Origin: Adineta vaga
Lineage: Eukaryota; Animalia; Rotifera
DNA length: 64,000 nucleotides
Direction: 5' to 3'
NCBI GenBank assembly: GCA_021613535.1
Contig: CP075495.1
Location: 8,804,001-8,868,000, forward strand
Every line of letters begins with the position of its first letter. Position 1 is the first letter of the stretch. A model generated the notes under the pieces. It was not told where the DNA came from. It did no database searches and saw nothing but the letters and a program-made list of their open reading frames with translations. Of the stretch, positions 20,065 through 22,745 are shown one piece after another. Both the position numbers and the translations under genes were made by a program.

Positions 20065-20730
20065 ATGACGGAAACACTTGTCAATACAAATACAAATCTT
20101 AATAATGATATTCAATCAATACGTGCAAAATTAATTGATAATACAGCACATTTATCAACTGAGCCGAAATCATTACCTGAATTAATTGAATTAATTTATC
20201 AAGCATTTGCTACCAACGAAGTGAATATTGATTATGTTCATACGATTATGCGAAATTACAAAGGTAATATGAGAGAATGGTCACCATATTTGAAATTTCA
20301 AGCAAATAAATATACAAGAAACTTAGTTGATGCTGGAAATGGAAAATTTAATTTAATGATTTTATGTTGGGCAGAGAGTCAGGGTTCATCAATACATAAT
20401 CATGCAAATTCACATTGTTTTATGAAATGTATTCAAGGTACATTAATTGAAACAAAATATGCTTGGCCAAAAGAAGGCGATGAGAATCAAGAAGAACCGA
20501 TGCATATAATCAGTCAAACAGAATTAAAAGACGGAATGGTTGCGTATATCAATGATTCCATCGGTTTACATCGTGTCGAAAATCCAAGTCATACGGATAC
20601 GGCTGTTACATTACATTTATATGTACCACCATATGATCATTGCAATATATTTGATGAACGTACTGGTCATACGAATGACGCATATGTTACATTTTATTCT
20701 GTCGGTGGTCAGTTAACAGCAAATCAATGA
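20065..20730 (+). CDS. CDO1: Cysteine dioxygenase type 1, intronless coding region
   Basis: YTRNLVDAGNGKFNLMILCW, IHNHANSHCFMK, LHRVENPSHTDTAVTLHLYVPPY (three-His iron site, Cys/Tyr crosslink residues). The likely start is ATG 20065, not the upstream GTG. Confidence 0.96.
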   Translation: MTETLVNTNTNLNNDIQSIRAKLIDNTAHLSTEPKSLPELIELIYQAFATNEVNIDYVHTIMRNYKGNMREWSPYLKFQANKYTRNLVDAGNGKFNLMILCWAESQGSSIHNHANSHCFMKCIQGTLIETKYAWPKEGDENQEEPMHIISQTELKDGMVAYINDSIGLHRVENPSHTDTAVTLHLYVPPYDHCNIFDERTGHTNDAYVTFYSVGGQLTANQ

Positions 20731-21235: not shown

Positions 21236-21787
21236 TTAACTTACCATATTATTAAAAATATCTCCAAGAGCTAATTCACCATTGCCGAGTGATTCTGGTA
21301 ATGGAATTTTATCTTGAATACTAAAGTATTTTCTTGTCCATTTCGATGACTGTTCATCACGAAAATCGACATGAGCCATTTTTAAATTAGGCCATACATA
21401 AATAATCTGTTTTAATGATGGTATTCGTTGATAATTCATTGATTTTTCATGTAATATCAAACGTTCTGTTGTTGGTGTAATAATTTCAATGATAACAATA
21501 GGTTCACGTGTTATTGCTTGATCAACTTTTGGTGCTTGATTAGTAAGAGATAAACCTGGATAATAGATACAGATTGGATCTGGTGTTTGTACACGAATAT
21601 CCATTGGAAGAACGTGAACATTTTTTAATTGTTGTTGTTCAATTTGTGCACTAATACTTTTCAATAATAGGTCATGTGCACTTTCACGAGATGGTAATGC
21701 ATAAACATATCCATTTAAATATTCATGTAATTGATTTGCTTCATCTTCACTATCTAAATATGTACTTAATTCAACAGATTTTTTCAT
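21236..21787 (-). CDS. Uma2/DUF820 (PD-(D/E)XK-fold) endonuclease-like domain, bacterial type
   Basis: TYLDSE...HEYLNGYVYAL...H...MDIRV...YYPGL...EPIVIIEIITPTTE...EKSMNYQRIPSLKQIIYV...IPLP...LALGDIF follows the recalled Uma2 consensus (EY.DG.V.AM, YPDV.V, P.LIVEVLSPST, EK...Y..IPSL.EY.LV). Confidence 0.85.
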   Translation of the reverse strand: MKKSVELSTYLDSEDEANQLHEYLNGYVYALPSRESAHDLLLKSISAQIEQQQLKNVHVLPMDIRVQTPDPICIYYPGLSLTNQAPKVDQAITREPIVIIEIITPTTERLILHEKSMNYQRIPSLKQIIYVWPNLKMAHVDFRDEQSSKWTRKYFSIQDKIPLPESLGNGELALGDIFNNMVS

Positions 21788-22745
21788 ATTATCTTCACAA
21801 ATTGTTCGTAATGGATAAGAACGAGTTAATATATTTGAAGATGATAATTGTCCATCCTAAACAATCAATCATGATTTCTAATTCATCGAACTATTTTCAT
21901 ACTTGTGAATCATTTGCTATTGAATCTGTTTGAGAATATTTCACAAGTGCACCATATTTTCCCATACGACATGCATCCGAACTTGTACTATTAACTTGTC
22001 CATGACAGTAACTAGCTAATAATTGATTATCTTTACTATTGAATAGAATACCACGTCGTAAAATAACATTTTCTCCAACTGTACCAACACATAGTGCTGT
22101 AATATCAGCTAAAGTTTTCGAACGATCATCAACACTTGGTAATGTTCCAAGAGTATCTTTATCAAAAATAATCTGAAATACATTCAAAAGAATAAAATCA
22201 AAGACATCGAATATTCAAGAAAAAACAAACTTTATCTTTCGTTTTTTCTGTTTGATTTGCTAACAAACTATTTGCAACTTGAGAAACAAGTTGTTGAAAT
22301 TTTTCATTTTTTGCAACAAAATCCGTTTCACAATTAATCTAAACAATAAAGAGATTTGAGAGCAATTATTTATCATAGATTATATCAAACAAACCTCAAC
22401 CATTACTGCTGAATCATTATTCGTAATAATACCAATTAAACCTTGTGATGCAGCACGACTTTGCAATTTCGTTGCACGACTCCAACCTTCGGCTTGGGCA
22501 CGTTGATGAAGCCATGTTTCTGCCTTTAAATATCAAAACTAATAATACACTAGTTTACAACGAGTTCGCCTTACTTGTTCTAAATTATCATTAAATTGTT
22601 GAAGAGCGGCTCGACAATGTGACAAAGAATAACCAGTCTTCTTTCTTAATATACTTAAAGGTGACGATGATGAAGTTGAAGCAATAGCCGATTTAGCTGA
22701 ATATCGAGGTATAGCTGTGTGAATGAATCGTCGCCAAACAAGCAT
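21788..22745 (-). CDS. TSFM: Mitochondrial elongation factor Ts, C-terminally truncated and continuing in frame into the Uma2 domain
   Basis: Exons 22745-22575, 22523-22395, 22338-22231 and 22172-21903 (226 codons) give LRKKTGYSLSHCRAAL, GWSRATKLQSR, EINCETDFVAKN, GENVILRR and GKYGALV. Exon 5 starts at 21856 and is open into the Uma2 ATG at 21787. Confidence 0.88.

Follow-up and report, generated by a model that had tools for sequence, protein, structure and literature searches.

A Uma2-family domain is predicted to interrupt mitochondrial EF-Ts in bdelloid rotifers

How does a gene for mitochondrial elongation factor Ts (EF-Ts; gene TSFM) come to run, without a stop codon, into a nuclease-fold domain of the Uma2 family, and what protein does such a gene encode? 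The question is raised by a minus-strand locus of the rotifer Adineta vaga, which lies in a 64,000-nucleotide stretch of contig CP075495.1 (positions 8,804,001 to 8,868,000; hereafter the window, from which all unlabelled coordinates are taken). The upstream half of the gene was read correctly in the original prediction: four EF-Ts exons, 226 codons in phase 0 throughout, lie at 22745–22575, 22523–22395, 22338–22231 and 22172–21903. Exon 1 encodes a presequence-like N terminus and the EF-Ts N-terminal domain (PF25025, E = 4e-10) and, given its match to bovine mitochondrial EF-Ts (1xb2_B), probably directs the product to mitochondria. Exon 2 was assigned by exon reading and Pfam, exon 3 carries the NCETDFV motif (PF00889 positions 6–39, E = 3e-10) and exon 4 ends in the loop after the GKYGALV strand. 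Membership in the mitochondrial EF-Ts family is supported by the N-terminal domain and by an EF_TS core with NCETDFV (PF25025 and PF00889, which are matched here alongside the Uma2 model PF05685), and the A. ricciae orthologue scores above the TIGR00116 cut-off. The anticipated 46-nt GT–AG intron, in phase 0, occupies 21902–21857, and the frame is indeed open from 21856 on through the Uma2 domain.

The inserted exon (21856–21245, minus strand) comprises 204 codons, is in phase 0 at both ends and encodes a variable linker, a conserved TRSYPLRTI motif and a Uma2/DUF820 domain without the Asp of the PD motif. Its apparent terminus, Met-Val-Ser followed by a stop, coincides with a consensus splice donor (ATG|GTAAGT at 21244, phase 0) that opens a phase-0 intron of 1,476 nt (21244–19769, minus strand); the corresponding intron spans 1,159–5,610 nt in other bdelloid species. 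The Uma2 exon end reads TG|GTRAG in all 12 bdelloid loci, and as our search pattern demanded a Val codon, the GT is conditioned and the informative part is the RAG at +3 to +5, which a Val-Ser pair would yield in about 11% of cases by codon use in these exons, the loci not being independent. Nested in this intron, in the opposite orientation, is CDO1 (20065–20730, plus strand; PF05995, E = 3e-62), an intronless cysteine dioxygenase gene of 221 codons. The same antisense arrangement, with an intronless CDO1 of 217–230 aa, was found in 11 of 11 loci. Elsewhere in the genome, a weak CDO-like remnant lies at C4:10125470–10125832 (minus strand); it is 35% identical and has stops within the match.

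Beyond CDO1, a phase-0 acceptor leads into a further exon (19768–19547, minus strand; PF00889 positions 166–204, E = 2e-5) that encodes the C-terminal 73 aa of EF-Ts, including the C-terminal helix and last strand of the core, and ends in TAA. The EF-Ts C terminus, which had been reported missing, is thus in place; the earlier reading had stopped at CDO1. A genome-wide search for this exon, as had been proposed, recovered it in single copy at this locus, and no further copy of it, nor of EF-Ts or Uma2, was found in the 100.8-Mb, six-contig assembly, on whose contig 2 the window lies. The exon has no Met before residue 41, an in-frame AG precedes it in all 11 loci that reach it, and its pairwise dN/dS of about 0.04–0.15 marks it as the best conserved among three TSFM segments compared. 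Because it is conserved and offers no early Met, splicing must join it to an exon further upstream. The A. ricciae protein aligns with bovine residues 2–197 before the insert and, through the counterpart of the last exon, with residues 209–275 after it, so that the Uma2 sequence interrupts EF-Ts in a short strand–helix loop of the core. In an AlphaFold model of this protein, the N-terminal EF-Ts part matches 1xb2 with Z 22.9; the C-terminal exon, where the underlying alignment is shallow, has pLDDT of about 36–70 and is not refolded into the core. Most likely, TSFM is a six-exon gene for one protein of about 503 aa, in which an N-terminal EF-Ts part, the Uma2 insert and a C-terminal EF-Ts part succeed each other (226 + 204 + 73 residues in A. 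vaga). We infer that splicing joins the Uma2 exon to the last exon, that its inclusion is constitutive and that the product is mitochondrial.

Is the join genuine? The comparison with other bdelloid genomes suggested earlier bears directly on this, and it revealed a recurring EF-Ts/Uma2 join rather than separate genes. Proteins with both parts are annotated in A. vaga, A. steineri, A. ricciae, Rotaria socialis, R. magnacalcarata, R. sordida, two Rotaria sp. Silwood and Didymodactylos carnosus, and independent assemblies show the join in seven or more named bdelloids as well as in numerous metagenome contigs. Insert and last exon are arranged in this way in each of the 11 loci long enough to show it, among them loci of Adineta, Rotaria and Didymodactylos, and the longer contigs compared have a common gene order (ORC2, a WD40 gene, TSFM with Uma2, CDO1 and a katanin-type AAA gene). 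The short intron before the Uma2 exon is in phase 0 and 46–62 nt long in 10 loci and is gone in one bdelloid lineage, whose contigs retain the other introns and CDO1. There, EF-Ts and Uma2 share one genomic exon in which the GKYGALV strand passes into Uma2 over a 22-residue linker, and a contig from a separate assembly of the lineage has the same continuous frame. The suggestion that two neighbouring genes had been fused near 21820, by a deletion on one allele or by mis-assembly, was thus already contradicted by cross-species conservation; as no part of EF-Ts is missing and we found no point in its favour, we give it practically no chance. What survives of the proposed host–foreign gene fusion is the chimera itself, which is old and conserved across the sampled bdelloids; it takes the form of an internal insertion in an EF-Ts of about 503 aa and not of a C-terminal replacement in a 432-aa protein.

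The same comparisons bear on whether the two parts are translated separately. Uma2 could be a gene of its own nested in a TSFM intron, with its start codon at 21787, where stand-alone Uma2 proteins begin. That Met is replaced by Ile, Phe or Pro in other species, however, whereas TRSYPLRTI, encoded ahead of it, is conserved; the ATG lies only 115 nt from exon 4, and the frame is continuous in the lineage without the short intron, all of which makes a separate gene highly improbable. Translation could instead read through the donor to the stop after Met-Val-Ser, so that a truncated EF-Ts carries the nuclease-fold domain to mitochondria. Most automatic models do end at or just past this point, among them the NCBI model for A. 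vaga (UJR27223.1, 432 aa), which is the reading of the original prediction. Set against this are the strongly conserved last exon, the consensus donor at 21244 and read-through tails of 2 to at least 40 aa, the length of which is not conserved. The models themselves, which are predictions and not transcripts, suggest how the truncation may have arisen: A. ricciae CAF0755894.1 (501 aa) and one R. socialis model, which itself continues into katanin, use the predicted junction between Uma2 and the last exon, and CDO1 is annotated in the three truncated-model loci compared but omitted in the full-length-model locus. This pattern fits a gene finder that cannot nest genes and must choose between CDO1 and the intron around it. 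A 432-aa product with a truncated EF-Ts is very probably wrong. Some R. socialis models err in another way, running the last TSFM exon on into the downstream katanin gene.

An alternative cassette is harder to dismiss, yet we still consider it unlikely. Here the working EF-Ts would be a 299-aa form that skips the insert, and the 503-aa form would be minor or conditional. The Uma2 exon is flanked by phase-0 introns on both sides, and a direct junction of exon 4 with the last exon would leave an ordinary-looking EF-Ts whose loop is near the bovine length. However, the lineage without the short intron is also without the usual exon-4 donor needed for skipping and offers in its place no more than a weak, non-conserved in-frame CAA|GTTCAA, a point in favour of constitutive Uma2 inclusion. 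Moreover, none of the database proteins retrieved skips the insert, and an intron of 46 nt normally commits its donor to the nearest acceptor. We therefore retain the 503-aa protein as the predicted product.

What is the inserted domain, and is it an active nuclease? The A. vaga insert matches PF05685 with E = 4e-8 (33.3 bits against a cut-off of 27). In the AlphaFold model of the A. ricciae protein, it has pLDDT of 92–98 and its fold matches 3ot2 (Z 17.9, r.m.s.d. 2.4 over 167 residues) and 1wdj (Z 17.2); since the alignment from which the model was built included Uma2 homologues, this match is not fully independent of the one in sequence. Residues 226–239 of the same protein, in the linker, fall below pLDDT 50. 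Large-subunit chains of the mitoribosome, which we take to be mL37 and mL65, match the modelled insert weakly, at Z of about 5.4, a score that does not show kinship. A search of PDB sequences with the Uma2 alignment gave no match, and an Atlas search with the insert gave no usable one. We compared the insert in 16 bdelloid sequences with 144 stand-alone Uma2 homologues. The Asp of the YYPD motif, present in 142 of the 144 homologues, is Gly in 13 and Ser in 3 of the bdelloid sequences. At a second position, 139 of the 144 homologues have Asp but all 16 bdelloid sequences have Ile or Val, and a His found in 139 of 144 is replaced by Gln in seven. By contrast with these positions, the Glu within EVLSP and the Lys within EK remain in place. 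In the PD-(D/E)XK superfamily, the Asp of the PD motif binds the catalytic metal. Because this residue is absent from all 16 sequences, the bdelloid domain is very probably inactive, and the nuclease that the fold had brought to mind is in that case no longer one.

The insert is kept in every bdelloid locus examined. Many of its residues are invariant, and it is under purifying selection: pairwise dN/dS for the Uma2 exon is about 0.1–0.4, similar to that of the exon-4 core (0.1–0.33), these values being rough and some pairs saturated. Its net charge ranges from −5 to −9; the stand-alone homologues are also acidic (median −8). The TRSYPLRTI motif ahead of the Uma2 domain (about 21826–21800, minus strand) loosely resembles TRSKTIG in the last exon (about 19735–19712, minus strand), and both sites have Arg-Pro in Didymodactylos. 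This likeness could be a relic of a duplication at insertion, or it could be chance.

The insert is likely to be of bacterial origin and to have been acquired once. A profile search of 1.84 billion representative sequences returned six bdelloid-type matches of at least 218 bits, and the next best reached at most 84 bits. The latter were mostly stand-alone Uma2 proteins of about 190 aa, at most 30% identical to the insert, and the best match outside bdelloids sits in an operon-like contig. The Uma2 family (DUF820/TT1808, PF05685) is listed as bacterial and is predicted to be a PD-(D/E)XK endonuclease (PMC3424549). The lack of matches hints that the insert may be absent from monogononts and acanthocephalans.

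On this evidence, we propose that a bacterial Uma2/DUF820 gene entered TSFM before the sampled bdelloids diverged and became an in-frame exon in a variable loop between the GKYGALV strand and the GRLLAQH helix. The domain would then have lost its catalytic Asp and been kept as a folded, non-catalytic accessory domain, riding at the side of EF-Ts on a flexible linker, the low-confidence residues 226–239. Because EF-Ts retains every recognizable element, it most likely still recycles mitochondrial EF-Tu, acting, as is typical of the family, as its GDP/GTP exchange factor. For the insert itself, binding of a protein or RNA partner in mitochondrial translation seems the most likely function, and we lean slightly towards such a role; it may quite possibly be kept solely because it must fold without disturbing EF-Ts. 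Given that an exon in phase 0 at both ends could be deleted to leave a normal-looking EF-Ts and yet persists in all loci examined, there is modest evidence for binding over mere tolerance.

A more specific role can be put forward as speculation. In Rotaria rotatoria, 11 of 21 mitochondrial tRNAs are without a T- or D-arm, whereas those of Brachionus are normal (PMC2784805), and the insert might serve as an RNA- or ribosome-binding arm that helps EF-Tu with such arm-less tRNAs, as a working part of translation. We regard this as rather doubtful, and the acidic charge does not favour simple RNA binding, although the homologues are acidic too. If true, it would mean that a horizontally acquired domain has become necessary for core translation in an animal. 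Acanthocephalans have reduced tRNAs as well. The A. vaga genome contains a candidate mitochondrial EF-Tu with introns (C4:6182585–6184187, minus strand) and a short C-terminal tail of about 17 aa, beyond which its exons, as read, contain nothing unusual. It also contains an apparently intronless, bacterial-type EF-Tu sequence (C3:15663874–15664990, plus strand; TIGR00485, E = 1e-98); its reading frame is broken by stops, its first GTPase motif is eroded, and it is probably a foreign copy in decay.

The fusion is apparently undescribed: a literature search, with most subscription journals outside its scope, found no paper on Uma2 in bdelloids or in rotifer EF-Ts. It is already visible in automatic annotations with Pfam matches, mostly in truncated form, and the nested CDO1 is the probable cause of truncation in most of the public TSFM models for bdelloids. 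Most of the foreign genes described from bdelloids encode enzymes that stand on their own. Here, a foreign domain, probably bacterial, is a conserved part of the only EF-Ts found in every bdelloid examined, a core component of translation, and the locus offers a clean example of how a foreign gene can become an exon within a core housekeeping gene. The insert has been kept across the sampled families after loss of the catalytic Asp, and bdelloid families date back 40–60 million years (PMC8885841).

How does this protein compare with known systems? It has the N-terminal domain, NCETDFV, GKYGALV strand, GRxLxQH helix and terminal DFVRxECGE of animal mitochondrial EF-Ts (bovine 1xb2_B) and is encoded by a single-copy gene, but its core is split by an insert of about 200 aa. 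Atlas clusters of eukaryotic mitochondrial EF-Ts, at about 305–312 aa, show no Uma2 family. With Uma2/DUF820/TT1808 proteins (3ot2 and 1wdj), the insert has in common the Pfam match, the predicted fold, the Glu of EVLSP and the Lys of EK; it differs in the loss of two Asp residues in all bdelloids, in identity of at most 30% and in being embedded in an animal protein. Bdelloid N4CMT, which unites a bacterial methyltransferase with a eukaryotic chromodomain (PMC8885841), is likewise an old foreign–host chimera common to bdelloids. In that case, however, an active foreign enzyme gained a host domain at its end, whereas in TSFM an apparently dead foreign domain came to lie in the middle of a core host protein. 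Chloroplast PETs (EMB2726), in which two S1 RNA-binding domains are fused to EF-Ts (PMC8343077), are also organellar EF-Ts proteins with an extra domain, but theirs is a terminal fusion of an S1-domain ribosomal protein and that of bdelloids an internal insertion of a nuclease fold. Finally, mitoribosomal mL37 and mL65 are described as repurposed endonucleases that bind reduced rRNA (PMC8998825). They provide a precedent for the insert, as nuclease folds put to non-catalytic use in the mitochondrial translation of animals, with the difference that they are ribosomal proteins and the insert belongs to an elongation factor.
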